Made by a program: the position numbers and the translations under genes. The notes under the pieces were generated by a model that saw only the letters and a list, made by a program, of their open reading frames with translations, searched no databases and had not been told where the DNA came from. Positions 19,473 to 38,258 of a stretch of 64,000 nucleotides of DNA are shown piece by piece (positions within the stretch are counted from its first letter, which is position 1; every line of letters starts with the position of its first letter). The DNA lies in the IMG/VR virus record IMGVR_UViG_3300028840_008160, positions 124,001 through 188,000 of that record; one strand, written 5' to 3'.

Positions 19473-19725
19473 ATCACATAAAGAATTAGTTGATGTACTG
19501 AAAAAAGTACAGACTAGCATTTGTGCTTATAGATCTGCTGCTTTTTGTGATTGTAAATATGGTGTGCAAAATGTTGGAAAATCAACTGAATCTGGTAATG
19601 GTTGTCCTGAAGTTAGAGAAGTAATTGCATTGTTTTCTGTATTAACACCATTTGAATATGAACGGCTTACAAAACGAATTTATAAAGAAAAATTGAAAAA
19701 AGTGAGGGTGTCATGGCACAAATGA
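19459..19725 (+). CDS. Small Cys-rich protein
   Basis: CAY...CDCKYG...GCPE; overlaps both neighbours. Confidence 0.55.
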   Translation: MRKFRSHKELVDVLKKVQTSICAYRSAAFCDCKYGVQNVGKSTESGNGCPEVREVIALFSVLTPFEYERLTKRIYKEKLKKVRVSWHK

Positions 19726-20777
19726 TACAACTACAAGATTTGTTGAAAGGTTATGTTGTTGATCGTGAAAATATTCAAAGTGTCGGCAATATGACAATGA
19801 TTCCAATTATTGCTGATGTTGAGTTTACAAACGTTGCCGATGTAAACGATGTGACGTTGAAACGAGATCCAGCATATAATACATTAGAATTTCAGAATGC
19901 TAGTGGAAATATCGGCATTGCTTTGCAAGGATGGACATTGATTGATAACAATCAGCGTGCTCAGGATAGAACAATTCCCTATGCTCATTTGATTAAAGCA
20001 GCAAATGCTAAACTTATTCCTGCAAATTGTGTTCAAGCACATCAAGGCGGACATTTTGATGCGTCAAAGGTTGATCAGGAATCTTTTATGGTTTTGCCGC
20101 CATCATTGCGAGGGCTTGCTTTGAAGAAGTCAACATATAGTTCAGCTGACTATAGTGCATTATGGGAATCACTTGGTAAATGGGCAAAAGGTGTGGATTG
20201 CTATAGTAATGGATTACAACTTTTTTACAGCAAGTTTGAAGATAAACTTGAACAATTCGTTGCGCAGTTTGAGCCTGTTGAAAAGCAATTGGGCTCGATT
20301 GTATTGATTAATGGTAAATTAGTTGCTATTGATTTGATGCCAAAATATAAGAATTGGAATTCAGTCTGGCGAGCGATTATTCGTGATAGTTATGGTGCTG
20401 AAGCTGTTCGAGTAATCGAAAATGAAGGAGCTATCAACATTCATCCTTCGTTGGACCTTTCAAGTATTAACACGATTGATGATCTTGAAGAAGCATACGA
20501 AAACATGAAAAATGATTTTTATGATTCTTTGCAAAACATGCTCAATCAAACTTTGCAGATGCATGTTAGTAATACTATTCTTGATCAAGCTGGCGAATTG
20601 ACAATGATGAAGTTTGAAAGCGACGAGTATACTGGTCAAGGCGTCGTTCATGGCGATGAACATTTTGTTTATTTGTCTGTAGTGAATTCATCGTCTAAAC
20701 CAAGTGGAAGTCGACCACAGCAGTTTCAATCACTGCGGAGAACGCCTTATAGCGGTACGTCATTCAATTTTAGATAA
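19713..20777 (+). CDS. ARPP-family-like protein
   Basis: IQSVGNMTMIPI, AQDRT, ANCVQ, FVAQFE, LGSIVLING...DSYG resemble ARPP (DUF6569-like) domains, from recall. Confidence 0.55.
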   Translation: MAQMIQLQDLLKGYVVDRENIQSVGNMTMIPIIADVEFTNVADVNDVTLKRDPAYNTLEFQNASGNIGIALQGWTLIDNNQRAQDRTIPYAHLIKAANAKLIPANCVQAHQGGHFDASKVDQESFMVLPPSLRGLALKKSTYSSADYSALWESLGKWAKGVDCYSNGLQLFYSKFEDKLEQFVAQFEPVEKQLGSIVLINGKLVAIDLMPKYKNWNSVWRAIIRDSYGAEAVRVIENEGAINIHPSLDLSSINTIDDLEEAYENMKNDFYDSLQNMLNQTLQMHVSNTILDQAGELTMMKFESDEYTGQGVVHGDEHFVYLSVVNSSSKPSGSRPQQFQSLRRTPYSGTSFNFR

Positions 20778-20786: not shown

Positions 20787-20859
20787 CTACGATTTTCATC
20801 ATGACTAAAGCTTCAGGTAAAATACCTGTTAATCTTCGTGATTTTAAGGTATATTTATC
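20787..20859 (+). promoter_or_regulatory. Tandem promoter-like motifs heading tRNA operon 1
   Basis: ctacg-N9-atgacta (20787-20807) and aatcttcgtgattttaaggtatatttatc (20831-20859, repeated at 31409). Confidence 0.6.
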
Positions 20860-20875
20860 TTGCTCTTTGAAAGTA

Positions 20876-21012
20876 TTGAAAGTGGCGCTTTAGAGCAAGA
20901 CTTCAGAAAAAGTAGCTCAGTTGGTAGAGCGTCAGTTTATTCAACTGAATGTCATGGATTCAAATTCCATCTTTTTTACCTTAAAAGGTTTTGTTCACTT
21001 TCGCCCTTTCAA
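20876..21012 (+). ncRNA. Y-RNA-like RNA 1 (closing stem enclosing a tRNA-like cloverleaf)
   Basis: 5' TTGAAAGTGGCG..GAGCAAGAC pairs with 3' GTTTTGTTC..CGCCCTTTCAA; interior has D, anticodon-like and T arms. Confidence 0.65.
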
Positions 21013-21054
21013 TTCTTTTTATAAGTAGAATATAGGTAACGGAAGGAATATTAA

Positions 21055-21138
21055 ATGACTTCACTGACTTGTAATAGCAATTACTTTACAAGTAGTTTTT
21101 CCAATTACGGAAAAACTGATCAGTGGGGTTTTGCATAG
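21055..21138 (+). CDS. Attenuator leader peptide 1 (MTSLTCNSNYFTSSFSNYGKTDQWGFA)
   Basis: SD GGAAGGA; rich in Asn, AGY-Ser, Phe, Cys codons matching downstream tRNAs. Confidence 0.75.
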   Translation: MTSLTCNSNYFTSSFSNYGKTDQWGFA

Positions 21139-21203
21139 GTTTCTAACTCAAAGCAAAACGAAATTCAAAGCTCCACTGATCTAACGGTCGGTGGGGCTTT
21201 TTT
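21118..21203 (+). terminator. Attenuator 1 antiterminator/terminator
   Basis: 21118-21133 pairs with 21166-21181, which otherwise forms terminator 21167-21203. Confidence 0.8.
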
Positions 21204-21230
21204 AATGGGAGAATGTTAATGAAAATCAAT

Positions 21231-21306
21231 GCTGCTTTAGCTCAGTCGGTAGAGCAAGGGACTGAAAATCCCTGTGTCCGCAGTTCAATTCTGCGAGGCG
21301 GTACCA
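21231..21306 (+). tRNA. tRNA-Phe(GAA)
   Basis: Cloverleaf; aggga-ctGAAaa-tccct; CCA. Confidence 0.95.
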
Positions 21307-21314
21307 TTTTTCAT

Positions 21315-21390
21315 GCCGTTGTAACTCAGTTGGTAGAGTGCTGGACCGAAAATCCAGTGGTCGGCGGTTCAAATCCGCCCGGCGGCACCA
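21315..21390 (+). tRNA. tRNA-Phe(GAA), C33 variant
   Basis: ctgga-ccGAAaa-tccag; CCA. Confidence 0.88.
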
Positions 21391-21613
21391 AAAGGAAACA
21401 AAATGAATGACAAACGAGTTCAGAGATTGATTGATGAACAAATTTGCTGTTCATTTGCTGAAGCGCGCAGATTAGTTGCCGCTATATCAGATGATTGTTT
21501 TGATTCATTTGTCGAAAGGCAAAAACGAAAAAGAGTAACATGGGTCGCAAGCCAATTCGTAAACCGACCCTTTTGTGGCCAAAGGAGGTAATTACTGGTA
21601 CGTAGCTATTTAC

Positions 21614-21701
21614 TGACGAGTAGCCTAGCGGCAAGGCAGTTGGCTGTTAACCAACCGTGACGCAAGTCCAATCGGGGGTTCGAATCCCTCCTCGTCAGCC
21701 A
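21614..21701 (+). tRNA. tRNA-Asn(GTT) with long variable arm
   Basis: gttgg-ctGTTaa-ccaac; 18-nt variable region; CCA. Confidence 0.85.
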
Positions 21702-21720
21702 AGTTCTTTGACATTTTTAC

Positions 21721-21995
21721 TGGCGTGTAGCTCAGTTGGCAGAGCAGTTGGCTGAATTTCGGCCCACTACATAGTAATATGTAGTTGCAAACTCTTTAAA
21801 TTCAGGGAAAGCTAAGTCATTTGTGATATGCTAATCCTGAGCGAAGCTCGAAAGAGAACGTGCAGAGACTATAATAGGAGCATCCAATTTTAGGATGATG
21901 GGATAGTCCAGACTACAAACAGTTTATACTGGCAGTGAAAACTGTAGTTAGTATGGTTAACCAACATGTCGTAGGTTCGAACCCTACCACGCCAG
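21721..21995 (+). tRNA. tRNA-Asn(GTT) split by group I intron
   Basis: Exons 21721-21753 and 21956-21995 rejoin to gttgg-ctGTTaa-ccaac. Confidence 0.9.
21754..21955 (+). mobile_element. Group I intron in tRNA-Asn anticodon loop (no ORF)
   Basis: P1 with U.G at splice site; AAATTCAGGGAA, AATCCTGAGC, GCAGAGACTA, GATAGTCC core elements; terminal G. Confidence 0.9.
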
Positions 21996-22063
21996 CTTTC
22001 TTTTCTCTTTGTCTGACACAAAACGGTGGATAAAGATAGCTAACGAATTTGTTGGACAATAAA

Positions 22064-22150
22064 GGAGGATTAGCGTAACCAGGTAACGCAGCAGATTGCT
22101 AATCTGTGAACTGAAAGGTTTTGGGGGTTCAAATCCCTCATCCTCCGCCA
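22064..22150 (+). tRNA. tRNA-Ser(GCT)
   Basis: gcaga-ttGCTaa-tctgt; long variable arm; CCA. Confidence 0.92.
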
Positions 22151-22443
22151 TGAAAATAAGGAGTAATTATGCATAAGGAGTTTCTTTATCACATGTTTAT
22201 GCGGAAAAGTATTTCAATTAACTCAGATTCAATTTGATGATTTTGATTGTGGGATGATGGGTTATTTGAAATGTCAATGTGGTAATGTGATTATGCCTCA
22301 TTGTGAAAGTCGCAAAGTTCAAATCAACGTAATTGATGTTGAAGGAGAAGATAATGGTTGGGCTTGATTAGAACTTAAATGAAATTCTACTTTTATCATA
22401 TAATAAAACAAAAAATAGTTTCACATTTTAACGGAAGGATTAT

Positions 22444-22836
22444 ATGATGAAAGTAGAAATCAAAAAACTTGGCGAAGAAGTTATTTGTGATGCTTTAGTT
22501 CAAGTTGATTATCTCAATAATCCGGATAAATTAAAAGAAGTTTGTTTAAGTTCGTTGAAAAAAGGTGATTGTCAAATTGTATCAGATCAAGCAGCTATTT
22601 TTCATCAATTTTCAGATGACAAAGATGGTCACGGAGATGGAGTAACAGGGTTGATCGTTATTAAAGAATCTCATTTTCATATAAGTACATGGCCAGAAGA
22701 ACAATATATACAGATTAACGTTAATACTTGTGGTCATATTGCTAAACCGTTAATTGCATTAAACTGGTTATTGTTTGAAATGAGAGTTGTAAAAAGTACA
22801 TTACAAGTGATTGAACGAGGAGTGTTGTTGAAGTGA
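22444..22836 (+). CDS. speD: S-adenosylmethionine decarboxylase proenzyme
   Basis: GVTG...ESH...TWPE...TCG signature. Confidence 0.88.
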   Translation: MMKVEIKKLGEEVICDALVQVDYLNNPDKLKEVCLSSLKKGDCQIVSDQAAIFHQFSDDKDGHGDGVTGLIVIKESHFHISTWPEEQYIQINVNTCGHIAKPLIALNWLLFEMRVVKSTLQVIERGVLLK

Positions 22837-22911
22837 AAAAGAAGAAAAAGACAAAAAGACAACCTTGTAATAGAGATTGTGCTAATTGTAATAAAATTCT
22901 TTGTTAAGATT

Positions 22912-23598
22912 ATGTCAAATTATACTGGACAATTTGCTGGACAAGGTCATATCTGGAAGAGAGGAAAAACTGACATTGAATTATTTGGGCCAGAGAAAGC
23001 AAAATTAATTGGTAAAAAAATATCTAAAGCGTTAAAAGGTAAAAGTACTGGTATAGCTAAGAATGCTGACGCAGAACTGTTGCGACGAAAGCGTATTTCA
23101 GATGGCATGAAAAAAGCACATCGTGAAGGTCGTGCTAATAAATGGAAAAGAACAAATTCGTTTGCAGAACAAATGTTTGAAGCTTTTTTGATTAAGAAGA
23201 ATTATAAAAAAGGTGTTGATTTTGTACGAGAAAAAAGGTTTGGATTGTTTTCAGTTGATTTTTTCTTTCCAGAAAAAAATTTAGCAATCGAAATAGATGG
23301 ACAAGCACATTTTAGATATGAACATTTGAAACAACGTGATAAAGTAAAAGATAATTTTTTAAATAGTAAAGGCATAATTGTTTTACGAATTATTTGGAAA
23401 GTATTGTTTCATCATGCTAAAATTACATTTAATCAAATTGAAAAATTGATAATTCAAAATGATAGAATTGCAATTGAAAAATTTATGCTTGATCAATTTG
23501 ATAAATTGTTAATGATGAAAAATGATAAGCATAAATATACAAAAGTAATGAAAGACGGTGTAGCAGAGTTGGTTTCATGCTCTAGACTGCAAATCTAG
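22912..23598 (+). CDS. DUF559/Vsr-like endonuclease (homing-type)
   Basis: VDFF...LAIEIDG..H...RD..KD.FL..KG..VLRI; 3' end runs into tRNA-Cys. Confidence 0.75.
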   Translation: MSNYTGQFAGQGHIWKRGKTDIELFGPEKAKLIGKKISKALKGKSTGIAKNADAELLRRKRISDGMKKAHREGRANKWKRTNSFAEQMFEAFLIKKNYKKGVDFVREKRFGLFSVDFFFPEKNLAIEIDGQAHFRYEHLKQRDKVKDNFLNSKGIIVLRIIWKVLFHHAKITFNQIEKLIIQNDRIAIEKFMLDQFDKLLMMKNDKHKYTKVMKDGVAELVSCSRLQI

Positions 23599-23630
23599 GT
23601 ACGTGGGTTCAAATCCCACCACCGTCTCCA
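23554..23630 (+). tRNA. tRNA-Cys(GCA)
   Basis: ctaga-ctGCAaa-tctag; U73; CCA. Confidence 0.92.
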
Positions 23631-23636
23631 AAATAT

Positions 23637-23923
23637 AGTTGCTCTGGGCTTACGCGCTTAATGAAAGTTGGGTGAGGAAACTCGGGACACCACTGCTGAA
23701 GGTAGGAGATAGGCACCTTAAAAGACGGCTCAAACAATAATTAGTATGACTTTGATGGGTATGTCCAAGCCGAATGAAAGTCCATCAGCCTATCGTTTTT
23801 ACTACCGAGGGTGCAACTCCAAGCAGACCTAGAGGGTGAGCAGCTCGATGATGGTCGGGTCGGAGGCATTAGTCAGATGTAAGCCGCCCGAAAGGGTACA
23901 GAATCCCGGTTATAGGAGCAACT
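23637..23923 (+). ncRNA. rnpB: RNase P RNA (compact, divergent)
   Basis: GAGGAAACTCGGGAC (CR-I-like) and ACAGAATCCCGGTTA (CR-V-like) form P4; P1 AGTTGCTCT/GGAGCAACT. Confidence 0.8.
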
Positions 23924-23948
23924 TTTTCTTTTGAAGGAGTTTATAAAT

Positions 23949-24034
23949 GGGTGAGTAGCTCAGTTGGTCAGAGCGCCGGGCCGTTAACCCGGAGGCCCAT
24001 TGGGATTTCGTGGGTTCGAATCCCACCTTGCCCT
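23949..24034 (+). tRNA. tRNA-Asn(GTT)-like, C33 and long variable arm
   Basis: ccggg-ccGTTaa-cccgg; 17-nt variable region. Confidence 0.75.
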
Positions 24035-24066
24035 CTTTCTACGCAAATAGATATGATTACTATAAC

Positions 24067-26496
24067 ATGTTAGAGATTATAGGGAAACATTCAACTGCTA
24101 AAATAATGGTTGACGAAGTTGAAGATTCGTGCATGACACAAATCAAAAATTTCGTTGATCATCCTGCATTTACTAATCCAATCGCAATCATGCCAGATAC
24201 ACATGCCGGTATCGGATCTGTTATTGGGTTCACTATGAGGTTGACTAATAAAGTAATACCAAATGTTATTGGCGTTGACATTGGTTGTTTTATTAAGTCG
24301 ACAAAAGTTTCTTTAGCTGATGGTCGTGAGTTAACATTTGAACAATTGATCGAAGAACATGACAAAGGTTTGAGAAATTTTTGTTTTTCAAAAGATGACA
24401 AAGGCAATATTGTTATTGAAGAGATTTTTAGTCCTAGAAAAACAAGAACCGTGACTGAGTTAATTGAGATTACATTAGATAATGATGAAGTGATTACGTG
24501 TACTGTTGATCATATTTTTTATGATATTAATTGTCAAGAGGTTAAAGTTAGTGATATTAATAAAGGACAATCGCTTTATCCTTTATATATTGAAAAATCT
24601 GGAACAGTTCAAGATGAATTGTCAAAAATTAGTAAGAAGTTCAAATTACGCGATTATTTAGTCGTGTACAATCCCAAAACATATAAGTATGATTATATTC
24701 ATATTTTAGCTGATGATTATAATTTACGACATCATGTTTATGAAAAATCAAAATCAATTAGACATCACATTGATTTTGATAAACACAACAATAATCCGAC
24801 AAATATTACAAGAATGCAATGGAAAGATCATTTTGTTTTGCATTCAAAACATGCGAAGCAGCAAAATATTAAAGGGAAATCTGGTTGGTCAGCTGCTTGG
24901 AGAAAAAATAAAGATCGTTTTTCTGAGATGTCATCTAAAAAAATGAAAAAATTGCATGAAGATGCTTTGTTTAAAGAAAGATTGAAAATTAGAGCTAAAA
25001 CAAATAGAAAAAAATATCTAGAATCAGATGCTTTTTATGAAATGACTAGAGATGCAGGTAATAGAGGAAAAAAATATCTTGTTGCATATTCAAAATCAGA
25101 AAAAGGTAGGAACAAATCATCTGAGATTGGCAGGAATGTAGTAAATCAAAAATATCGTTGTTCTATTTGTAATAAGACAATAAAAAGTGCACGGGCATGC
25201 CCTAATCATTTTAACAGAAAAGATCATAAGCAATGTAATTTGAATATGTCTGATATGATATTGTTAAAAAATCACACAGTAAAAAGTATAAAGCGAATTA
25301 GTTGCGAGCCAACAGATGTGTATTGTTTTACGACTAGATTTAGTAATTTTGCATTAGCATCAGGTGTGTTCGTTCATAATTGTGGCATGTTGTCTATTAA
25401 CATTGGTAAAACTTTGCCGATATCGTTAGAGGATTTTGATACAAAAATTCGTCAGAGAATTCCGTTTGGGCAAGAAGTGCATGATGAAGCAGTTATTCGT
25501 ATGGATACGGACTTTCCATGGAAAATTGCAATAAGTAAAGCTGAAGCATTTGCTGCAGCGTTTCGCGAATCTTATAGAGATATCAGTGTTCCAAGATATT
25601 GTATGGACTGGTTTCTTGAAAAATGTGATACTATTGGTGGTGGAGCAAGACGAGTAATTAATTCATTAGGAACACTTGGCGGAGGAAATCATTTTATCGA
25701 AACTGGTGTTTCAACAACAGGTGGTGATTACTGGATTACTATACATTCTGGGTCAAGGAATTTTGGATTAAAAGTTTGTAATTACTGGCAAAGTATTGCA
25801 GCTAAGTCTTTCAAAAAAGAAAGAACTGGAAAGATTCAAGAGCAAATAGAAGAAGCAAAACGTACTCTTGAAGGAAAAGAGTTGTACGATAGAATTAAAG
25901 AAATTAAACGGTCAACATCAACAAGAGGTATTGACATAACACATCTTGAATGGTTGGAAAATGAAGTCGCTGATGGTTATTTATTTGATATGATATTTGC
26001 TCAATTGTATGCTAGTGTTAATAGATCATATATGGCTAAGTTGATTTGTGATGTACTTGGAGTAGAAATACAAGATTCGATTGAGTCTATTCATAACTTT
26101 ATAGATTTTAATGACTTCATCATTAGAAAAGGTGCTATTAGTTCGTATATTGGTGAACCAATGATTATACCATTTAATATGCGTGATGGTATACTTATTT
26201 GTGAAGGAAAATCGAACAAAGAATGGAATTATTCTGCGCCTCATGGTGCAGGCAGATTGATGAGCAGAACTCAAGCAAATAAACGAATTGATTTAGACAC
26301 ATTTAAGAGTCAAATGAACGGGATTTTTTCTACATCAGTGTGCAAGTCGACATTGGATGAAGCACCGGATGCTTATAAGAGTTCTACAATGATAGAGCAG
26401 GCTATTGAACCAACAGCTGCGATTTTAAACAGGATAAAACCAATTCATAATATGAAAGATTCAAGTGAGTTTCAATTTAGAAGAAAGAAGCAATAA
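24067..26496 (+). CDS. rtcB: RtcB RNA ligase containing an intein
   Basis: MPDTHAG, GVDIG|CG, GTLGGGNHF, HSGSR, HGAGR, DEAP.AYK; ATG 24067. Confidence 0.93.
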   Translation: MLEIIGKHSTAKIMVDEVEDSCMTQIKNFVDHPAFTNPIAIMPDTHAGIGSVIGFTMRLTNKVIPNVIGVDIGCFIKSTKVSLADGRELTFEQLIEEHDKGLRNFCFSKDDKGNIVIEEIFSPRKTRTVTELIEITLDNDEVITCTVDHIFYDINCQEVKVSDINKGQSLYPLYIEKSGTVQDELSKISKKFKLRDYLVVYNPKTYKYDYIHILADDYNLRHHVYEKSKSIRHHIDFDKHNNNPTNITRMQWKDHFVLHSKHAKQQNIKGKSGWSAAWRKNKDRFSEMSSKKMKKLHEDALFKERLKIRAKTNRKKYLESDAFYEMTRDAGNRGKKYLVAYSKSEKGRNKSSEIGRNVVNQKYRCSICNKTIKSARACPNHFNRKDHKQCNLNMSDMILLKNHTVKSIKRISCEPTDVYCFTTRFSNFALASGVFVHNCGMLSINIGKTLPISLEDFDTKIRQRIPFGQEVHDEAVIRMDTDFPWKIAISKAEAFAAAFRESYRDISVPRYCMDWFLEKCDTIGGGARRVINSLGTLGGGNHFIETGVSTTGGDYWITIHSGSRNFGLKVCNYWQSIAAKSFKKERTGKIQEQIEEAKRTLEGKELYDRIKEIKRSTSTRGIDITHLEWLENEVADGYLFDMIFAQLYASVNRSYMAKLICDVLGVEIQDSIESIHNFIDFNDFIIRKGAISSYIGEPMIIPFNMRDGILICEGKSNKEWNYSAPHGAGRLMSRTQANKRIDLDTFKSQMNGIFSTSVCKSTLDEAPDAYKSSTMIEQAIEPTAAILNRIKPIHNMKDSSEFQFRRKKQ
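24286..25380 (+). mobile_element. Intein with HNH endonuclease domain in RtcB
   Basis: Starts CFIKSTKV, ends GVFVHN before Cys+1; internal HHIDFDKHNNNPTNI. Confidence 0.9.
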
Positions 26497-27177: not shown

Positions 27178-27449
27178 ACTGTGTAATCTGCGAACGCGAG
27201 GTACCGGGTGAACGGTTTCTTGAAAAGCATCATTTGATTCCAAAATGTGGCAAGGGAAAAGACACTGTAAAAGTATGTGTTGATTGCGGTGATCAGATTC
27301 ATGTATTATTTACTGAAAAGGAACTACGAGACATATACAATACAGTTGAAAAGTTGAAATCAAATGAGCGAATGCAGAAGTGGATTAGATGGATTCAAAA
27401 AAGACCAACATTTGGTACTGTTTGTATGAAAAGAAAAAAGCGCCTATAG
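27174..27449 (+). CDS. Small HNH-family protein
   Basis: CVIC, HHLIPK, CVDC. Confidence 0.7.
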   Translation: MNCVICEREVPGERFLEKHHLIPKCGKGKDTVKVCVDCGDQIHVLFTEKELRDIYNTVEKLKSNERMQKWIRWIQKRPTFGTVCMKRKKRL

Positions 27450-27511
27450 TTCAGTGGTAGAACAACGGTCCCTAAAACCGTGTGTCGTGGGTTCAAATCC
27501 CTCTGGGCGCA
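27440..27511 (+). tRNA. Amber-suppressor-like tRNA (CTA)
   Basis: acggt-ccCTAaa-accgt; cloverleaf with one T-stem mismatch. Confidence 0.7.
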
Positions 27512-30673: not shown

Positions 30674-31336
30674 ATGGACATAACAATAGATCTTGGTGAA
30701 TTCTCAAGATCAACAAGACGAGCTATTAGAAAAGCTTTGCAAAAACCACATTTATCGGACATGATAGATGATCAACAGGCTCAAACATTGTTAAAGTACT
30801 TAGCTATGACTATCAATGATGAATTGTCTGGCGATGTTATAGAAATGGGTTGCTGTTGGGGAGTTAGTGCTGTATATGAGCAAGCATTATTAAACGAAAT
30901 GGAATCAGATAAAAAATTGTATTTATATGATTCATTTGAAGGACTACCAGAAAAAATGCTGCAAGATGATAATGAAGTTGACATAAAATTTTATGAAGGA
31001 ATGATGAGAACAACTGTTGAAAAATTAAAAGACAATTTTAAAAAATGTGAGTTGCAAGAACCGAATGTGATAAAAGGCTGGTTTGATGAAATTCCAGAAA
31101 ATAAATTTCCAAAACAAGTATGTTTTGCATTTTTTGATTGTGATTTTTATACATCAATGAAAGATTGTTGGACAATTATTTATCCCAAATTAGTTAAGGG
31201 AGCTCGTGTTGTTGTACATGATTATAATTGGGAAGTTTTGCCCGGTGTAAAAATCGCATGCGATGAATTTCTTGCTGACAAGCCTGAAAAAATAGAAGAT
31301 TTAGGATGTCGGATGGGGCTTGTAATAAAAAAATAG
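30674..31336 (+). CDS. TylF/MycF/NovP-family O-methyltransferase
   Basis: YDSFEGLP, KGWF, DCDFY, HDY. Confidence 0.85.
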   Translation: MDITIDLGEFSRSTRRAIRKALQKPHLSDMIDDQQAQTLLKYLAMTINDELSGDVIEMGCCWGVSAVYEQALLNEMESDKKLYLYDSFEGLPEKMLQDDNEVDIKFYEGMMRTTVEKLKDNFKKCELQEPNVIKGWFDEIPENKFPKQVCFAFFDCDFYTSMKDCWTIIYPKLVKGARVVVHDYNWEVLPGVKIACDEFLADKPEKIEDLGCRMGLVIKK

Positions 31337-31340
31337 TTTT

Positions 31341-31437
31341 CTACGCATTTCAAAGTGATTATCTTTTTATCTATGGATTAAAACTGAATTAAAAAGAAAA
31401 AACCTTTCAATCTTCGTGTTTTTAAGGTATATTTATC
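31341..31437 (+). promoter_or_regulatory. Tandem promoter-like motifs heading tRNA operon 2
   Basis: ctacg-N9-gtgatta (31341-31361) and 29-bp near-copy of 20831-20859 at 31409-31437. Confidence 0.6.
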
Positions 31438-31460
31438 AGGAATTTAAACGGGATAGACTA

Positions 31461-31589
31461 ATGCAAACTCCAAGAATCCATACAGCTTCGCTTATAAAGC
31501 ATGTACATGCAGCTGTCATGGTCTTGTCCTCATTATCATGGCTACTCGAAGGAGAAGGTTATGATAAAACGAGGGCAGGTGGGGTTTGA
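31461..31589 (+). CDS. Attenuator leader peptide 2 (MQTPRIHTASLIKHVHAAVMVLSSLSWLLEGEGYDKTRAGGV)
   Basis: Contains cognate codons for 19 of 21 elongator anticodons in operon 2. Confidence 0.75.
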   Translation: MQTPRIHTASLIKHVHAAVMVLSSLSWLLEGEGYDKTRAGGV

Positions 31590-31654
31590 TGGAATAAACG
31601 AAACGATCTGAAAATCAAACCCCGCCGATCCAAAAGATCGACGGGGTTTTTTTT
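31578..31654 (+). terminator. Attenuator 2 antiterminator/terminator
   Basis: GGTGGGGTTTGAT (31578-31590) pairs with ATCAAACCCCGCC (31614-31626), the left arm of terminator 31617-31654. Confidence 0.8.
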
Positions 31655-31673
31655 GCTCTTGGGTGATAGTCAT

Positions 31674-31751
31674 GGTGATAGTAGCTCAGCTGGTTAGAGC
31701 ACTGGATTGTGGTTCCAGATGTCGGGGGTTCGAATCCCCTCTATCACCCCA
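31674..31751 (+). tRNA. tRNA-His(GTG)
   Basis: G-1:C73; ctgga-ttGTGgt-tccag. Confidence 0.93.
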
Positions 31752-31816
31752 AAGATTTTGATTGTGCTCTTTGACAGTCTCGGTAGTTGTTGCAAGCACA
31801 TTGTTGATGTAAACAA

Positions 31817-31900
31817 GCCGAAGTGGTGGAATTGGCAGACACGCTAGGTTCAGAGCTTAGTGAGAGCAATCTCATGCTGGTTCAAGTCCAGTCTTCGGCA
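31817..31900 (+). tRNA. tRNA-Leu(CAG)
   Basis: Type II cloverleaf. Confidence 0.9.
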
Positions 31901-31947
31901 TGACAATATACGATGTGGGAGTATTTTGGAAACTTCCACATCGTTCT

Positions 31948-32030
31948 GCGGTCGTGGTGGAATGGCAGACACGCTACTTTGAGGTGGTAGTGAGAGCAAT
32001 CTCGTGAAGGTTCAAGTCCTTTCGACCGCA
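31948..32030 (+). tRNA. tRNA-Leu(GAG)
   Basis: Type II cloverleaf. Confidence 0.9.
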
Positions 32031-32041
32031 TTAAATTTTGC

Positions 32042-32117
32042 GGAGACGTAGTTCAGTTGGTAGAACGCTGGATTGTCGATCCAGAGGCCGCGGGTTCAAA
32101 CCCCGTCGTTTCCGCCA
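32042..32117 (+). tRNA. tRNA-Asp(GTC)
   Basis: ctgga-ttGTCga-tccag; CCA. Confidence 0.9.
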
Positions 32118-32348
32118 AATTAAATTTGGTATGTAATGACAAGATGGGTTCGATTCCCATAACTTCTCTTCTAAAGAAGTGCTGGAAGCAATTTACTATG
32201 GATGTTATAGTAAAAATGAACGCGCGCAGGGTAATCGTAATTGATCCTATCATAGACGCGCATAAGAAACTGTTAGTCCAGTTTCATTGTAGAACTTAAT
32301 GATGGTACAAATGAAGTTACAGATGAAAATTATGATTATGGGATTTGC

Positions 32349-32423
32349 AGGCGTATAGCTCAATGGTAGAGCATTGGTCTCCAAAACCAACGGTTGCGGG
32401 TTCAAGTCCTGCTGCGCCTGCCA
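32349..32423 (+). tRNA. tRNA-Trp(CCA)
   Basis: ttggt-ctCCAaa-accaa; CCA end. Confidence 0.93.
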
Positions 32424-32581
32424 TTACTTGAAAGGTTCTAATGGTACAAATTGTAAGAGTTAAATGCAAAGAATGTAATCACAGATTTACACATGTTAAA
32501 GTAGATGAAGCAATGATTACATGTCCGATTTGTCAGTCAGATACGTTAATTGAACAAGTTTTTCATGAAATTAAAGTTTAA

Positions 32582-32657
32582 GCGGGCGTAGCTCAATTGA
32601 TAGAGTTCCACCCTTCCAAGGTGGCTGTTGTGGGTTTGAGTCCCATCGCCCGCTCCA
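32582..32657 (+). tRNA. tRNA-Gly(TCC)
   Basis: ccacc-ctTCCaa-ggtgg; CCA. Confidence 0.9.
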
Positions 32658-32661
32658 ATAT

Positions 32662-32748
32662 GGGTAGGCTGCGGAGACGGTGAGTCGCGGAAGACTGTAA
32701 ATCTTCTCCCTTCGGGGTGTGGGGGTTCGAATCCCTCCCTGCCCACCA
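32662..32748 (+). tRNA. tRNA-Tyr(GTA)
   Basis: gaaga-ctGTAaa-tcttc; long variable arm. Confidence 0.92.
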
Positions 32749-32754
32749 TTTTTT

Positions 32755-32828
32755 GGTCCGGTAGTGTAGTTGGTTAACACGGTACTCTCTCAAGGTACAG
32801 ATCACGAGTTCGATCCTCGTCCGGACTA
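32755..32828 (+). tRNA. tRNA-Glu(CTC)
   Basis: gtact-ctCTCaa-ggtac. Confidence 0.88.
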
Positions 32829-32880
32829 TTGCTTATGACAACAGATTTAATCGTCTGTTGACAGTTCGTTTTTCTAAAAC

Positions 32881-32954
32881 GGCCCGGTAGTGTAGCTGGT
32901 TAACACAACGCCCTTTCAAGGCGTAGATCGCGCGTTCAAGCCGCGTCCGGGCTA
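32881..32954 (+). tRNA. tRNA-Glu(TTC)
   Basis: acgcc-ctTTCaa-ggcgt. Confidence 0.9.
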
Positions 32955-33184
32955 TTTTAGGAGGATGAATGATATTTCTAAACTATCTAAATTGTGGAAT
33001 TGTTCGCATACACAAGTTAGACGATATTTACGAGATAATGATATGACATTTAACATGTTGAAGAAATGAATGCTGTATTCAACGTTATTTTGAATGCAGA
33101 GACGCGGAGTTCGATTCTCCCATGGGCTACCAACATTTAACAAAGGAGGAAAATATGACTTAACATCTTAACAGGAGTTAAGTT

Positions 33185-33439
33185 ATGTCAAGATCGTATC
33201 GAAAGCCCTGGTGCGTTGATGGTTACGGAACGAAAGGTAAGAAAATTAGCAAACGATTTGCTAATAAGACTGTTCGTAATGCTGATGATGTTCCAAATGG
33301 AAAAGCATATCGAAAATATTTTGAATCGTGGAACATTTCTGATTACAGATTTTTTATGGACAGTGAACCTTACTTTTCAAGAATTACTTTACAGTGGGAA
33401 GAACCACTGACACCTACGTGGAAGGCGCGTAGAAAGTGA
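33185..33439 (+). CDS. Small basic hypothetical protein
   Basis: SD AGGAG; MSRSYRKP...WKARRK. Confidence 0.65.
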   Translation: MSRSYRKPWCVDGYGTKGKKISKRFANKTVRNADDVPNGKAYRKYFESWNISDYRFFMDSEPYFSRITLQWEEPLTPTWKARRK

Positions 33440-33444
33440 AGTTT

Positions 33445-33518
33445 GCGGTAGTCGCATAGTGGCCAATTGCGCCACGTTGCCAACGTGGATGTCGGGAGTT
33501 CGAATCTCCCCTACCGCA
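33445..33518 (+). tRNA. tRNA-Gly(GCC)
   Basis: ccacg-ttGCCaa-cgtgg. Confidence 0.88.
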
Positions 33519-33535
33519 TTTATTTTGAAAATAAA

Positions 33536-33687
33536 AGGAAGTGGTGCTCTAGAATAAGACTTCAGAAAATCTTTTTACAGGTTCGAGTCCTGTTCTCCCC
33601 GCTATTATGGGGAGATAGCCAAATTGGTAAGGCAAAAGATCGCTAATCTTTGATAATTTTCATGGTTTTATTCACTTTCACCCTTTC
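33536..33687 (+). ncRNA. Y-RNA-like RNA 2 with circularly permuted tRNA-like domain (YrlA-like layout)
   Basis: Same closing stem as 20876; interior order T-arm, loop-closed acceptor stem (TCTCCCC/GGGGAGA), D-arm. Confidence 0.7.
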
Positions 33688-33694
33688 TTTTTAT

Positions 33695-33771
33695 GGGCGC
33701 ATAACTCAGCGGTACAGAGTACCTGCCTTACAAGCAGGAGGTCGTAGGTTCAAATCCTACTGTGCCCACCA
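33695..33771 (+). tRNA. tRNA-Val(TAC)
   Basis: cctgc-ctTACaa-gcagg; CCA. Confidence 0.93.
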
Positions 33772-33778
33772 TATTTAT

Positions 33779-33851
33779 CGCGGGGTGTAGCAGTTGGTAG
33801 CTTGTTGGGCTCATAACCCAACGGTCGTCGGTTCGAGTCCGACCCCCGCTA
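33779..33851 (+). tRNA. tRNA-fMet(CAT)
   Basis: CGCGGGG start, 1:72 mismatch, GGG/CCC in anticodon stem. Confidence 0.9.
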
Positions 33852-33921
33852 TTTACGCAGACTTAGATGGCCGGAGTCACTGCCCCTAGGGTATGTAAGG
33901 CCGCATCGACAGTCTGCAAAT

Positions 33922-33957
33922 GCCAGTGTGGCGGAATGGTAGACGCGCTAGTTCTAA
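33922..33957 (+). pseudogene. 5' half of a tRNA-Leu truncated next to endonuclease gene
   Basis: GCCAGTG-TG-GCGGAATGGTAGACGC-GCTAG then no 3' half. Confidence 0.65.
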
Positions 33958-33995
33958 TCTTTTGATATGAGAGTTTCTAATAAAAGGAAGTTCTC

Positions 33996-34748
33996 GTGTA
34001 CAAATGTGAAATATGTGGTAGAAAATTTGAAAAAGCTCAGCAAAAAGGTGGCCATGTTTATTATTGTCGTGCAAAACGTGATGGTATAGATTTACGGCCT
34101 GGCGACAGATTTGCTAAAGGTCGCGGCTGGGCGAAAGGTTTAACAAAAGATACTCATTCTGGTTTGATGAACATGTCAAGGCGGCATTCTGGACGGTTAA
34201 AGGGAAGGACTGATACACCTTATACAACTTGGCGAAAAGATAAAGAAAAAAGTAGAAAAGCAAACTTAAAATTATCAATTACACGAAAACGATTATTTGC
34301 TGACGGCAAATTAACAGTACCTGTTGCTAGCAAACGAGGACAATCGTCAATTTTTATTTATAATAGTAATAGGTATCATTTTCGTAGTAGATACGAGTTT
34401 GTTTTTGCGTTGTTTCTAGCGCACAAAAATATCATATTTAATTATGAAAATGTTCGTGTTGAATACAATAGTATAACAAGAATTTGTGATTTTGAAGTAA
34501 ATGGCAAACTTTACGAAATAAAAGGCTATCATTCTGATAAAGATATAATTGTGAAAAATACATTTACAACTTCAGGATTTGATGTTAAGTTTGTTTATAG
34601 ACCGTTTATCAAATTGGCTAGAAAGTATTTACATCGTCGCGGTTATGACATAAAACATTTGCTAGAACAAATTAAACAATATAGAGATCAAAATCGTATT
34701 TTTGAATTTGAATTTTGCCACAGTGGAGAAATTGGTATACTCGCATGA
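33996..34748 (+). CDS. Putative homing endonuclease (Zn finger + PD-(D/E)XK)
   Basis: CEIC, FRSRYE, CDF...YEIKG; ends inside tRNA-Leu(TAG). Confidence 0.7.
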   Translation: MYKCEICGRKFEKAQQKGGHVYYCRAKRDGIDLRPGDRFAKGRGWAKGLTKDTHSGLMNMSRRHSGRLKGRTDTPYTTWRKDKEKSRKANLKLSITRKRLFADGKLTVPVASKRGQSSIFIYNSNRYHFRSRYEFVFALFLAHKNIIFNYENVRVEYNSITRICDFEVNGKLYEIKGYHSDKDIIVKNTFTTSGFDVKFVYRPFIKLARKYLHRRGYDIKHLLEQIKQYRDQNRIFEFEFCHSGEIGILA

Positions 34749-34799
34749 TTTAGGGTCATGTGCATTTTATGCATAAGGGTTCGAGTCCCTTCTGTGGCA
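34717..34799 (+). tRNA. tRNA-Leu(TAG)
   Basis: catga-ttTAGgg-tcatg; type II. Confidence 0.85.
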
Positions 34800-34885
34800 T
34801 TTAAGGAGGAATGAAATGAGAGTTAAGCTATGTCCTACACAAGTTTTTGATGGCCGAATATGCATGACAAATCAATGTTATGTAT

Positions 34886-34958
34886 AGGGGCATAGCTCAG
34901 GGGTTAGAGCGACGGCCTTAAGCCGTGTCTGTCGTGGGTTCAATTCCCACTGCCCTCA
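34886..34958 (+). tRNA. tRNA-like RNA with 5-nt anticodon loop (CTTAA)
   Basis: Normal D and T arms; acggc-cttaa-gccgt. Confidence 0.6.
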
Positions 34959-35008
34959 TTGTGAAAACTATGAAATCAATAGCATACAATTCTCTAAAAG
35001 GAGATTGT

Positions 35009-35332
35009 ATGAATGAAAAAGACGATGATCTTCGACCAGCGACTAATGATGAAATGATACAACATGCTAAAGAGCTTATTGATAGCTGCGAAACTGAAGA
35101 TGATTATAAAAAAATGGAAAACTTTATGGGTTGTGCAATTATCATTGCAGCTGCAAATCTAGAAGTAAGAGAAGGCGTTGAACAACTTCTTGAGAATAAA
35201 GCTAAAGAATTTGGTTTGAAATATAAACGAATGAGTAGATTTTTTCTTAAACAAAGTGACAAGAAAATCTTAGCTTTAGCAAAAAAGATTGTTAGAATGG
35301 TTTACAAAAAAGTATTGGCAGAAAACATATAA
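35009..35332 (+). CDS. Hypothetical protein
   Basis: SD AGGAG before ATG 35009. Confidence 0.55.
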   Translation: MNEKDDDLRPATNDEMIQHAKELIDSCETEDDYKKMENFMGCAIIIAAANLEVREGVEQLLENKAKEFGLKYKRMSRFFLKQSDKKILALAKKIVRMVYKKVLAENI

Positions 35333-35415
35333 GCCCAGGTGGTGGAATGGCAGACACTGAAGACTTAAAATCTTCTGGGATTTATCCCGTACCGGTTCGA
35401 ATCCGGTCCTGGGCA
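35333..35415 (+). tRNA. tRNA-Leu(TAA)
   Basis: gaaga-ctTAAaa-tcttc; type II. Confidence 0.92.
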
Positions 35416-35423
35416 TTTAGATT

Positions 35424-35942
35424 ATGTCTAAGATTGTGATTAATAGACATGAGCTTAAAAAAGCTGTTGTGCAGTCTAGAACATACAAAGATGTTTTTCG
35501 GCATCTTTGTATTACTGGAACAGGACATCATTATCGTATAGTTAAACGATTAGTAAAGCAGAGTGGTTTGAGCATTGATCATTTTGTTGGTCGAGGATGG
35601 AATAAAGGACTGAAGCTTAAAGGGATTAGACAAAAACCATTAAATGAAATTTTAATTGAAAATTCAACATATACAAATACGAATAGACTTCGTAAGAGAC
35701 TTATTGATGAAGGTATTTTCGAACAAAAATGTAACAATTGTAAACGAACAAAGTGGTGTAATAAGCAAATACCTTTAGAATTAGAACATAAGAATGGAAT
35801 TAAGCATGATTTTAGAATAGAGAATTTAGAACTTTTATGTCCTAATTGTCATGCTCAAACACGATTTTATCGCGGGCGAAATATGAAAAGTGCGAGAAAG
35901 AAAAATGAAGCACATCTGGTTGTTTTTCTATCATGTGTTTAG
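35424..35942 (+). CDS. HNH endonuclease
   Basis: CNNC...LELEHKNG...N.ELLCPNCH. Confidence 0.85.
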   Translation: MSKIVINRHELKKAVVQSRTYKDVFRHLCITGTGHHYRIVKRLVKQSGLSIDHFVGRGWNKGLKLKGIRQKPLNEILIENSTYTNTNRLRKRLIDEGIFEQKCNNCKRTKWCNKQIPLELEHKNGIKHDFRIENLELLCPNCHAQTRFYRGRNMKSARKKNEAHLVVFLSCV

Positions 35943-36010
35943 TGTTGTAGAAGTTATATTACTAATGCCTGCAATTTTTGTTGAGCTGGCATTTACTAGA
36001 AGATTTTTAT

Positions 36011-36084
36011 CGCGGGGTAGAGCAGTCTGGTAGCTCGTTAGGCTCATAACCTAAAGGTCGGCGGTTCAAATCCGCTCCCCGCTA
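36011..36084 (+). tRNA. tRNA-fMet(CAT)
   Basis: CGCGGGG start, 1:72 mismatch, ctCATaa loop. Confidence 0.88.
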
Positions 36085-36088
36085 TTTT

Positions 36089-36164
36089 GCCTCCTTAGCT
36101 CAGTTGGTAGAGCAACTGACTCTTAATCAGTAGGTCGTAGGTTCGATCCCTACAGGGGGTACCA
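36089..36164 (+). tRNA. tRNA-Lys(CTT)
   Basis: actga-ctCTTaa-tcagt; CCA. Confidence 0.93.
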
Positions 36165-36165
36165 A

Positions 36166-36339
36166 TTTACTTGACATTCAGCGAGCCTATTACGCTGGAG
36201 TCTTTAAGGTTTGCATGAGGATAACCGTAATTGGCCTCAATTGAAATGCATAAGCCTGACTGCGAGAGAGTAGGCGGGATCGGTAAAAGTCCGGGGAAGT
36301 ATCTGTGGAAGGTTGCCCTTAAATTCAATGTCAAGTAGG
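36166..36339 (+). ncRNA. Unclassified structured RNA
   Basis: Ends pair (TACTTGACATT/AATGTCAAGTA); GC-richer interior; fills the gap between two tRNAs. Confidence 0.5.
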
Positions 36340-36340
36340 T

Positions 36341-36413
36341 GCGATAGTAACTCAGTTAGTAGAGTATCTGCTTCCCAAGCAGAATGTCGCGGGTTCGAGT
36401 CCCGCCTATCGCT
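36341..36413 (+). tRNA. tRNA-Gly(CCC)
   Basis: tctgc-ttCCCaa-gcaga. Confidence 0.88.
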
Positions 36414-36429
36414 TATTTTGAAAGGAGAG

Positions 36430-36669
36430 ATGATGGGATATGCGATTTTAGGGAAACACAGTATCACTTGTTTTAGAGGCGGAACACCTTTAGCAAATAT
36501 GAAAATGAAGGTGAAAGACAGAAAAAATAACGAGTGGTATTGTAAATGTTCAGAAGAAGAATTCAATCGCTATCCTGATTCTCGATCTGTTGAAGTATAT
36601 GATAATAAAGGACGTTTAGCAAAGAAGTTTCTTAAAGGATTTTTGACAATTGTTGAAATGCGCTCATAG
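36430..36669 (+). CDS. Hypothetical protein
   Basis: SD AAGGAG before ATG 36430. Confidence 0.5.
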   Translation: MMGYAILGKHSITCFRGGTPLANMKMKVKDRKNNEWYCKCSEEEFNRYPDSRSVEVYDNKGRLAKKFLKGFLTIVEMRS

Positions 36670-36732
36670 CTCAATTGGTAGAGCAATGCCCTTTTAAGGC
36701 ATGGGTTTCAGGTTCAAGTCCTGATGGGCGTA
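36660..36732 (+). tRNA. tRNA-Lys(TTT)
   Basis: atgcc-ctTTTaa-ggcat. Confidence 0.9.
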
Positions 36733-36845
36733 TTTAGACTTAAATGATCTCATTTGATATAATTTGGAGGTGCAGAATGTTTAACAAACGGTACAAACGA
36801 AAACGAAAGACATTCTGCCCGTAGTCGTGATGGCTACGGGCTTAT

Positions 36846-36927
36846 GGGCTCGTGGCCAAGTGGTAGCCGAAAGGCGAAGGCAACGGACTTAATCCGTGGA
36901 TCGGGGGTTCGAATCCCTCCGGGCCCA
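36846..36927 (+). tRNA. tRNA-like RNA with 5-nt anticodon loop (CTTAA) and D-loop hairpin insert
   Basis: acgga-cttaa-tccgt; GCC-GAAA-GGC inserted in D loop. Confidence 0.6.
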
Positions 36928-36948
36928 TTAACTTTGGAAAGATTCATA

Positions 36949-37395
36949 ATGGATAAACCGATATTAGGCTTTTTTGGTGAGTACAGGTTCCTTTCAAATT
37001 TTCATTTATGCGAGATTGTTTACAAAGGAATAACATTTCCTAGTACTGAACACGCGTTTCAAGCTGATAAGGCTACAAATGAAGAATTAAGACAATATAT
37101 TGCTGATCTACCTACATGTAGAGCAGCGAAAAAGGCAGGCGGAACAATTGACCTTCGTGCTCATTGGGAAACTGATAAGATTCAAGTAATGATCGACATT
37201 ACTAGAATAAAATATCAGATACCAGAACTTAAAGAAAAATTACTTGCTACTGGGCAAGCATATTTAGAAGAAACAAACACATGGAATGATAAATTTTGGG
37301 GTGTTTGTAATGGTGTTGGACAAAATCAACTCGGTAAGACATTAATGCAAGTGCGATATGAATTAAGATGGATTGGTCAAGACAAATATACTTGA
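36949..37395 (+). CDS. NADAR-family (YbiA-like) protein
   Basis: FLSNF, STEHAFQA.K, LLATG, D.FWG, G.NQLGK.LM.VR. Confidence 0.9.
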   Translation: MDKPILGFFGEYRFLSNFHLCEIVYKGITFPSTEHAFQADKATNEELRQYIADLPTCRAAKKAGGTIDLRAHWETDKIQVMIDITRIKYQIPELKEKLLATGQAYLEETNTWNDKFWGVCNGVGQNQLGKTLMQVRYELRWIGQDKYT

Positions 37396-37582
37396 AAAAA
37401 TGCGTATATGAATCAGAAAGTTTGGAATGTACAAGCTCGCAGAGGTGGTCCATATTGCGAACATTTTAGATGTCCAAGAATCAAGAGAAAGACGGGCAAA
37501 TGTGACGGAAAATGCAGTAAACATGGAACAACAAGCGCTAGAATTGGAATAAAACGAGCTAGACAACATATGAAACAGATAA

Positions 37583-37668
37583 GCCGGGATGGTGGAACGG
37601 CAGACACAACGGACTCAAAATCCGTCGAAGGCAACTTCATGAGGGTTCAAGTCCCTCTCCCGGCACCA
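37583..37668 (+). tRNA. tRNA-Leu(CAA)
   Basis: acgga-ctCAAaa-tccgt; type II; CCA. Confidence 0.93.
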
Positions 37669-37676
37669 TTTTAATT

Positions 37677-38090
37677 ATGAATCTTACGTCAACACCAGTA
37701 AGACGAAAAAATTATTTTGTTGAAGCATTACAGCAAAGCGCTTTACCAGAGCCATTTGCTTTACCAGAGCCATTTGTTACATACAACGACATTCATAATT
37801 TTTTTCGCAAACGAGGATTTAATAATGTACGAATTGAACCTGGTGATTTTGGTAGGATTGATATTTATATAAAAGAGTATTGGTTTAATTTAAATAAGTT
37901 GTTAAAACAAGTTGATGAAGTAAAACTTGTTGGCATATTAGTTTCGTTGCACAGACCAACATTTTGGCAATGGTTAATGACAATAAAAATTGTTAGAGTT
38001 TGTCGATATAAGTTGATAAAAATTGGTCGTCGATATAGAAAAAGATCAAGACCAATTGTTTCAAAATTCGATGTAATAACGGAGGATTAG
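37677..38090 (+). CDS. Hypothetical protein
   Basis: ORF track; tandem ALPEPF duplication. Confidence 0.5.
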   Translation: MNLTSTPVRRKNYFVEALQQSALPEPFALPEPFVTYNDIHNFFRKRGFNNVRIEPGDFGRIDIYIKEYWFNLNKLLKQVDEVKLVGILVSLHRPTFWQWLMTIKIVRVCRYKLIKIGRRYRKRSRPIVSKFDVITED

Positions 38091-38166
38091 GATAACGGTA
38101 ATCAAAAAACAACATATAAAATGGAAGATAGGAAAAAGTAGCGTTAGACGATTTTTAAAAGTTTAT

Positions 38167-38258
38167 GGAGGAGTGCCGGAGTCTGGTTTATCGGAGCAGT
38201 CTTGAAAACTGTCGGTCGTTCACACGGCCCGTAGGTTCAAATCCTACCTCCTCCGCCA
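38167..38258 (+). tRNA. tRNA-Ser(TGA)
   Basis: gcagt-ctTGAaa-actgt; long variable arm; CCA. Confidence 0.93.

Follow-up and report, generated by a model that had tools for sequence, protein, structure and literature searches.

The tRNA array and its terminators

The stretch of DNA analysed here (64,000 nt, hereafter the window) comes from the 329.8-kb IMG/VR contig IMGVR_UViG_3300028840_008160, which is present also in one sediment and one seawater metagenome; no RNA run containing the phage was listed. It carries 56 tRNA genes, all on the plus strand between 20.9 and 51.0 kb, besides a tmRNA gene (ARAGORN). No close relative of the window was detected among GenBank phages, the near-identity search returning only a 35-nt tRNA fragment, and a near-identity search of IMG/VR with the window sequence had the source contig as its sole match. 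Located at 27440–27511, 34885–34959 and 50894–50967 are tRNAs of the suppressor type (anticodons CTA and TTA) and one whose anticodon, CTTG, has four bases. Several HNH endonuclease genes and one DUF559 nuclease gene are dispersed along the array, and the tmRNA gene (103 bits) abuts a group I intron (94 bits) with a 16-nt overlap (53241–53851).

A scan of the plus strand for strong hairpins followed by a T-run identified only six in the array. Four of them, at 21203, 31654, 41234 and 47006, end 18–33 nt 5′ of the tRNA that opens a block and are each preceded by a short open reading frame (ORF); the remaining two (27547 and 51082) close units. The first of these ORF-plus-terminator modules had been described previously as an attenuator spanning 21055–21203, and re-reading of the sequence confirmed these coordinates to the base. 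The four modules, referred to below as candidate attenuators 1–4, are listed in Table 1 together with the features that surround them.

Table 1. Coordinates of the candidate attenuators and associated features in the window
Feature	Start	End	Strand	Remarks
26-nt element, first copy	20834	20859	+	5′ of module 1
Odd tRNA, anticodon ATT	20906	20980	+	C37; between the 26-nt element and leader 1
Shine-Dalgarno sequence GGAAGGA	21041	21047	+	7 nt 5′ of the leader 1 ATG
Candidate attenuator 1	21055	21203	+	
Leader ORF 1	21055	21138	+	ATG at 21055; 27 sense codons and TAG stop (21136–21138)
Regulatory codon run, leader 1	21070	21105	+	Codons 6–17 (Cys, Asn, Ser-AGY, Phe)
Region 1 (anti-antiterminator)	21057	21067	+	Pairs with 21120–21130
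Region 2 (antiterminator 5′ strand)	21118	21133	+	
Region 3	21166	21181	+	Common to antiterminator and terminator
Intrinsic terminator 1	21167	21203	+	15-bp stem 21167–21200, UAAC loop, six Ts to 21203
Block 1	21231	27511	+	tRNAs, speD-like gene, DUF559 nuclease gene, RNase P RNA, RtcB gene with intein
tRNA-Phe (two genes)			+	One at 21315–21390
GTT tRNA	21614	21701	+	
tRNA-Asn(GTT), split	21721	21996	+	
tRNA-Ser(GCT)	22064		+	
speD-like gene	22444	22836		
tRNA-Cys(GCA)	23554		+	
RNase P RNA	23636	23928		
GTT tRNA	23949	24035	+	
RtcB gene	24010	26496		
CTA tRNA	27440	27511	+	
Terminator closing block 1	27519	27547	+	Next strong terminator; the unit under attenuator 1 probably ends here
26-nt element, second copy	31412	31437	+	5′ of module 2
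Candidate attenuator 2	31461	31654	+	
Leader ORF 2	31461	31589	+	42 codons; stop 31587–31589
Region 2, attenuator 2	31577	31587	+	
Terminator, attenuator 2	31618	31654	+	20 nt before tRNA-His
Candidate attenuator 3	41053	41234	+	
Leader ORF 3	41053	41169	+	38 codons
Region 2, attenuator 3	41168	41179	+	Over the stop codon
Terminator, attenuator 3	41201	41234	+	33 nt before tRNA-Met
Candidate attenuator 4	46883	47006	+	
Leader ORF 4	46883	46945	+	20 codons
Region 2, attenuator 4	46946	46956	+	
Terminator, attenuator 4	46975	47006	+	18 nt before tRNA-Pro

The presence in block 1 of a speD-like gene and of a gene for RtcB tRNA ligase, both noted in the preliminary description, was confirmed, and the RtcB gene is interrupted by an intein. 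The RNase P RNA reported there is matched end to end by the class A model, but its 55 bits (E 2e-16) fall below the cut-off of 100. It would be a reduced RNA of 293 nt with conserved P4 strands, encoded between tRNA-Cys and a GTT tRNA. We know of no other phage-encoded RNase P RNA, and a literature search for one returned nothing relevant.

Several tRNAs of this block are unusual. Long variable arms are normally found in bacteria only in Leu, Ser and Tyr tRNAs, but the GTT tRNAs at 21614 and 23949 combine them with an Asn anticodon. The second of these and the tRNA-Phe at 21315–21390 have C, not U, at position 33. In the class I tRNA-Asn(GTT), 202 inserted nt separate anticodon positions 34 and 35; this insertion matches no Rfam intron model at E ≤ 1, and the split tRNA is missed by standard ARAGORN.

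Leaders and alternative helices

Attenuator 1 combines all the structural elements of leader-peptide attenuators, namely a Shine-Dalgarno sequence with an ORF, cognate codons, a terminator, an antiterminator and a 1:2 pairing. The helix formed by regions 1 and 2 encloses the codon run. The 16-bp antiterminator that had been proposed to compete with the terminator was recovered as a pairing of regions 2 and 3 that overlaps terminator 1 (−28 kcal/mol for the 86-nt fold, z −6.0). Terminator 1 itself (−23.2 kcal/mol, z −5.8) ends 27 nt 5′ of the first tRNA-Phe, and the z values of the three helices all lie between −5.8 and −6.3 relative to shuffled sequence. The leader's stop codon begins 3 nt past the end of region 2, so a ribosome terminating there would mask this region. 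In footprint-constrained folding, a ribosome placed on the stop codon left the terminator as the best fold, and a ribosome placed on codon 10, 14 or 18 left the antiterminator.

The sister modules share this placement of region 2. In all four modules of the window, as well as in eight modules of relatives (see below), a strand that mimics the 3′ arm of the terminator starts between −19 and +3 nt from the stop codon of the leader; a ninth relative module (L039) is weaker, with a duplex of −6.5 kcal/mol starting at −22. The duplexes of the mimic strands with the 5′ arms of terminators 1–4 amount to −20.8, −17.1, −17.0 and −9.5 kcal/mol, as compared with best values of −4.5 to −9.2 kcal/mol, at unrelated positions, for four control terminators. 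The terminator that closes block 1 has no upstream strand mimicking its 3′ arm. Attenuator 4 has a weak antiterminator (−9.5 vs −14.5 kcal/mol for its terminator). Shine-Dalgarno-like sequences were found 5′ of leaders 3 and 4 and also 5′ of the orthologues of leader 1 in relatives L003 and L021.

The only two copies of the 26-nt element in the window lie upstream of modules 1 and 2. The element contains the sequence TTTCAA-17-TATATT, a weak match to the sigma-70 consensus, and is found also in L003 (11123–11148); it could be a putative promoter or operator shared by tRNA modules. An 18-mer taken from it gave only chance matches in IMG/VR, and these had no tRNAs. The odd tRNA between the first copy and leader 1 has counterparts with an AAT anticodon in L003 (11202–11276) and a normal Ile-GAT in L021 (8362–8436), and may be a drifting or decaying tRNA kept at a fixed position. 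More generally, the sites upstream of the leaders of the window are only weak sigma-70 matches, and the sigma-70 consensus may not be that of the host; in L011, good sigma-70-like sites lie just 5′ of two leaders. A CCCTTTCAAT box seen upstream of several leaders was considered as a promoter and rejected, as it is not enriched in the window (18 matches vs 14.8 expected). Between leader and first tRNA, no sigma-70-like site of at least 9/12 was detected in any of the four window modules, nor one of at least 8/12 in module 1.

Codons of the leaders and the tRNAs that follow them

Codons 6–17 of leader 1 read CNSNYFTSSFSN. As had been counted before, nine of these 12 codons are read by tRNAs of block 1: the two Phe-GAA, the three tRNAs with a GTT anticodon, Ser-GCT and Cys-GCA. 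All four sense anticodons of the block are sampled by the leader, 16 of whose 26 codons lie outside the block 1 set. The run has a binomial p of 2e-6 relative to phage codon usage and is the only one of its kind on the plus strand. Antisense frames elsewhere in the window reach 9–11 of 12 block 1 codons, so we rejected the count as sufficient evidence; significance comes from the joint tests below.

The two TAC codons of the leader had been taken as a possible trace of a relocated tRNA-Tyr gene. Block 1 indeed lacks a tRNA-Tyr, the Tyr-GTA tRNA of the window being at 32662. This idea did not hold up, as the TAC codons are not conserved: one of them is AGC in L003, and L021 has none. From the sequence they look like filler.

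The other leaders show a similar correspondence with the tRNAs that follow. Leader 4 contains the run RRPQPQQPR, nine Arg-CGN, Pro and Gln codons that are cognate to seven of the eight anticodons of the following Pro/Gln/Arg block. After leader 3, which has DMDMRQVTCAATTIRNGAT as its second half, come Met, Thr, Ile, Ala, Asp, Arg-AGR and Val tRNAs, and all 11 anticodons of block 3 are sampled. Leader 2, which includes LSSLSWLLEGEGYDKT, stands before tRNAs for His, Leu, Asp, Trp, Gly, Tyr, Glu, Val, Met, Lys, Ser-UCN and Thr and samples 20 of the 22 anticodons of block 2. Leader 2 also samples 10 of the 11 block 3 anticodons, mostly by its first half, and leader 3 begins 96 nt after the last tRNA of block 2; from these two observations, the attenuators may act in series on one long transcript.

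Over the four leaders, 64 of 123 codons are read by the leader's own block, as opposed to 37.3 ± 4.75 when codons are shuffled among the leaders (none of 200,000 shuffles reached 64), and the true assignment of leaders to blocks is the best of the 24 possible ones, with 64 vs 49 for the runner-up. The leaders cover 42 of the 45 distinct sense anticodons of their own blocks; random ORFs of the same lengths, with codons drawn from phage codon usage, cover 23.1 ± 2.8 (0/20,000 reached 42). Codons that are very rare in the phage are included, such as TCC, which makes up 4 of its 783 Ser codons. Read in the +1 frame, the leaders yield only 41 of 123 codons and 31 of 45 anticodons, and in the +2 frame 32 and 24, which shows that the signal belongs to the reading frame and not to base composition. 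Because block 2 reads 52% of all codons, leader 2 taken alone is not significant (p 0.10); its +1 frame matches equally.

Relatives of the phage were found through homologues of the ARPP-1-like gene (19713–20777) that lies just upstream of attenuator 1. In L003, where this gene is 84% identical at the protein level, the orthologue of attenuator 1 carries a Ser to Cys and a Tyr to Ser-AGC change, both within the codon set, and compatible base changes in the terminator. A PTH2-like gene and then two tRNA-Phe genes lie downstream. The orthologue in L021 is more diverged: of the 18 codons in its run, 17 belong to the Asn/Cys/Ser-AGY/Phe set, in a changed order and with no Tyr. In its terminator, both bases of a pair have changed from A-U to G-C and from G-C to A-U, and the antiterminator partner still pairs through G-U. 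All three helices, including 1:2, are kept in both orthologues. The gene for a PTH2-like peptidyl-tRNA hydrolase is the first after attenuator 1, before tRNA-Phe, in both genomes (L003 11528–11875; L021 8686–8986, approximate), and the window has no such gene directly after attenuator 1.

In L011 (57% identity) the tRNAs are arranged differently, and its four modules have leaders that follow the new blocks. A leader rich in Val, Glu, Met, Ala, Asn and Gly is followed by Gly, Asn, Met, Glu, Val and Ala tRNAs; Thr and Lys tRNAs come after the leader KTKTTKTKTT; the leader SSLLIDCLYSFIWR stands ahead of Phe, Tyr, Leu, Ser, Ile, Cys, Leu, Leu, Arg and Ser tRNAs; and a leader with Pro and Asp precedes Pro and Asp tRNAs at the end of the contig. 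All 20 anticodons are covered (random 12.6 ± 1.85, 0/20,000), and the leader-to-block diagonal is 37 vs 20.1 by shuffling (1/200,000). Single modules were found in L014, where a Ser/Leu leader with TTA as its sole Leu codon stands before Leu-TAA and Ser tRNAs, and in L012 (a leader plus terminator). The most distant case, L039, is the 462-kb uncultured GenBank phage LR756500.1 (29% identity in ARPP-1), of which one 41-kb stretch was scanned; its module (L039 4881–5017) consists of a His/Trp/Glu/Val-rich leader and a terminator, followed by His, Glu, Val and Trp tRNAs, and has a weak antiterminator.

No modules were found in four relatives with scattered single tRNAs (L017, L018, L031 and L037), and a scan for leader plus terminator in the tRNA region of phage T5 (AY543070, 28–41 kb) returned none. 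The tRNA array beside the ARPP-1 gene is absent in L004/L007, L005 and L028–L030, and none of three contigs reached via a 251-aa protein encoded upstream of leader 4 has a tRNA array.

These data bear on several alternatives to ribosome-mediated attenuation. The hairpins could be ordinary terminators of upstream units, preceded by chance ORFs, with each block transcribed from its own promoter. AT-rich DNA does contain many short ORFs, antisense frames reach 9/12, and promoter prediction is unreliable when the host is not identified. Nevertheless, we regard this explanation as highly improbable: the 18–33 nt between terminator and first tRNA contain no promoter-like site, the placement of region 2 at the stop codon recurs in 12 of 13 modules (L039 being weaker) while controls lack a mimic strand, and the leader-block match, its frame dependence and the conservation of the codon set all exceed chance expectation. 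It is extremely improbable that the ORFs are functional micro-proteins whose codon match is a side effect of composition. They are kept as ORFs in relatives, but the orthologues preserve composition and not residue order or length, and the non-homologous leaders of L011 and L039 obey the same rule but use different sets of amino acids.

The alternative helices are not in themselves proof that a ribosome takes part, and a protein or a directly bound tRNA might determine the choice between terminator and antiterminator, in a TRAP-like or T-box-like fashion; the 26-nt element of modules 1 and 2 could, for instance, bind a regulator. Such control appears very unlikely, since neither the T-box nor any other riboswitch model gave a match at E ≤ 1, every module has an ATG-initiated ORF that is preceded by a Shine-Dalgarno sequence or is promoter-proximal and whose stop overlaps region 2, and the signal is frame-specific. 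The T-box search covered 20800–24100 and 31300–47100 of the window.

We conclude that 21055–21203 probably attenuates transcription by way of a ribosome-translated leader peptide, as the first of four such elements that divide up the tRNA array. This reading is supported by the four-region geometry, by three sister modules with block-matched leaders and by orthologues that keep the codon set and the helices.

The putative gated unit and the proposed control of the array

The scan for hairpins with T-runs on the plus strand detected nothing terminator-like between 21203 and 27519. With no further strong terminator before the one closing block 1, attenuator 1 is positioned to control speD, RNase P RNA, RtcB and the amber-suppressor-type tRNA. 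The preliminary suggestion that it gates speD, RNase P RNA and rtcB as well as the tRNAs is consistent with this layout, and internal promoters are possible. Block 1 ends with the CTA tRNA gene, and of the four leaders three have TAG as their stop. A ribosome that read through a leader stop would run on through the terminator, which could create a positive feedback.

The anatomy of the modules is classical, and what is new is their wiring to the tRNA genes that the leader polls. As in the enterobacterial leader-peptide attenuators (trp, his, leu, thr, ilvGMEDA and pheA), a short leader with regulatory codons, here predicted to be translated, is combined with 1:2, 2:3 and 3:4 helices that exclude one another; region 2 lies at the stop of the leader, and an intrinsic terminator stands before the first gene. 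Leaders that poll several amino acids are known from thr and ilv. However, the enterobacterial attenuators control biosynthetic enzymes, whereas the phage modules precede tRNAs and tRNA-processing or repair functions, are phage-borne and stand four in series per array; phage leaders sample nearly every isoacceptor of the block with 1–3 codons each, in contrast to the run for one amino acid in enterobacterial leaders. Because each isoacceptor is polled by so few codons where classical attenuators use runs, the sensitivity of the phage modules is uncertain. Closest in logic is E. coli pheST, where a leader-peptide attenuator controls a translation component, phenylalanyl-tRNA synthetase, for the amino acid that its leader polls. 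That system is chromosomal, polls one amino acid and has a synthetase as output, as opposed to tRNA output and up to 22 anticodons in the phage modules.

T-box riboswitches likewise attenuate transcription according to the state of a particular tRNA and regulate genes related to translation, but they bind uncharged tRNA directly via a specifier codon, with no leader translation, whereas the phage modules carry ORFs. Attenuators 1, 2 and 3 did not match any of the Rfam leader families (E ≤ 1 for attenuator 1), and Thr_leader (RF00506) aligns full-length to attenuator 4 with 34.4 bits, below the cut-off of 55. The tRNA region of phage T5 is similar to the array in being a large cluster with interspersed short ORFs and homing endonuclease genes; its record (AY543070) has many promoters annotated among the tRNAs and no terminators inside the cluster. 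A full-text literature search found no attenuators controlling phage tRNA genes and no leader peptides matched to tRNA arrays; work in subscription journals may exist.

In the mechanism that we propose for attenuator 1, RNA polymerase would transcribe the leader while a ribosome translates it, the two processes being presumably coupled. When charged tRNAs are plentiful for all leader codons, the ribosome would reach the stop codon and cover region 2, so that regions 3 and 4 form the terminator and transcription ends ahead of the first tRNA. Scarcity of any polled tRNA (for leader 1, Phe-GAA, the GUU-anticodon tRNAs, Ser-GCU or Cys-GCA) would stall the ribosome in the codon run, upstream of region 2; region 2 would then pair with region 3, no terminator would form, and the polymerase would enter the block that encodes the polled tRNAs. 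One stall at any polled codon should suffice to open the switch. Read-through into block 1 would also express speD, RNase P RNA and RtcB, and the newly made tRNAs would lift the stall. As the leader polls the very tRNAs that form the output, the circuit would keep tRNA availability under negative feedback. That the hairpins function as terminators and that tRNA availability is the physiological signal is what we infer from these arrangements.

The same attenuator could instead have evolved to sense when the host is starved of amino acids, like the attenuators of the trp, his and thr operons, with the tRNAs as passengers. The architecture is the classical one, and the speed of a ribosome at codons cannot by itself tell lack of an amino acid from lack of a tRNA. 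Against this stands the nature of the products, as tRNAs are unable to relieve such starvation, together with the coverage of 42 of 45 anticodons by leaders that use rare codons. The match is, moreover, at the level of isoacceptors and codons: leader 1 and its orthologues use Ser-AGY but leader 2 uses Ser-UCN, leader 4 uses Arg-CGN, and the L014 leader has TTA only. We therefore hold starvation sensing to be quite unlikely. Such codon-level matching (Ser AGY vs UCN, Arg CGN vs AGR, one codon per isoacceptor in leader 4) favours sensing of tRNA over sensing of amino acids.

On a more tentative level, the four modules may together constitute an isoacceptor-resolved tRNA homeostat combined with a response to tRNA damage, and their recurrence would suggest a general, overlooked layer of control. 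Loss of one tRNA species, be it through host anticodon nucleases, through decay of host tRNAs after shut-off or through a mismatch with phage codon usage, would then call up replacement tRNAs. Machinery for maturation and repair would be induced along with them, RNase P RNA and RtcB in this phage and the PTH2-like hydrolase in L003 and L021. Since two or more distant lineages of huge phages show the design, such control may be general among viral tRNA arrays.

The modules bear on two open questions, why large phages carry tRNA arrays and how these arrays are expressed. They suggest that arrays, rather than just being turned on, are metered block by block, each by a sensor that reads the very quantity its genes supply, and that tRNA supply, repair (RtcB) and maturation (RNase P RNA) may be linked in a single regulated unit. 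Leader-peptide attenuation, known for biosynthetic operons and one synthetase operon, would thereby be extended to tRNA genes and to viruses, and the leaders could be compact programmable sensors of single isoacceptors.
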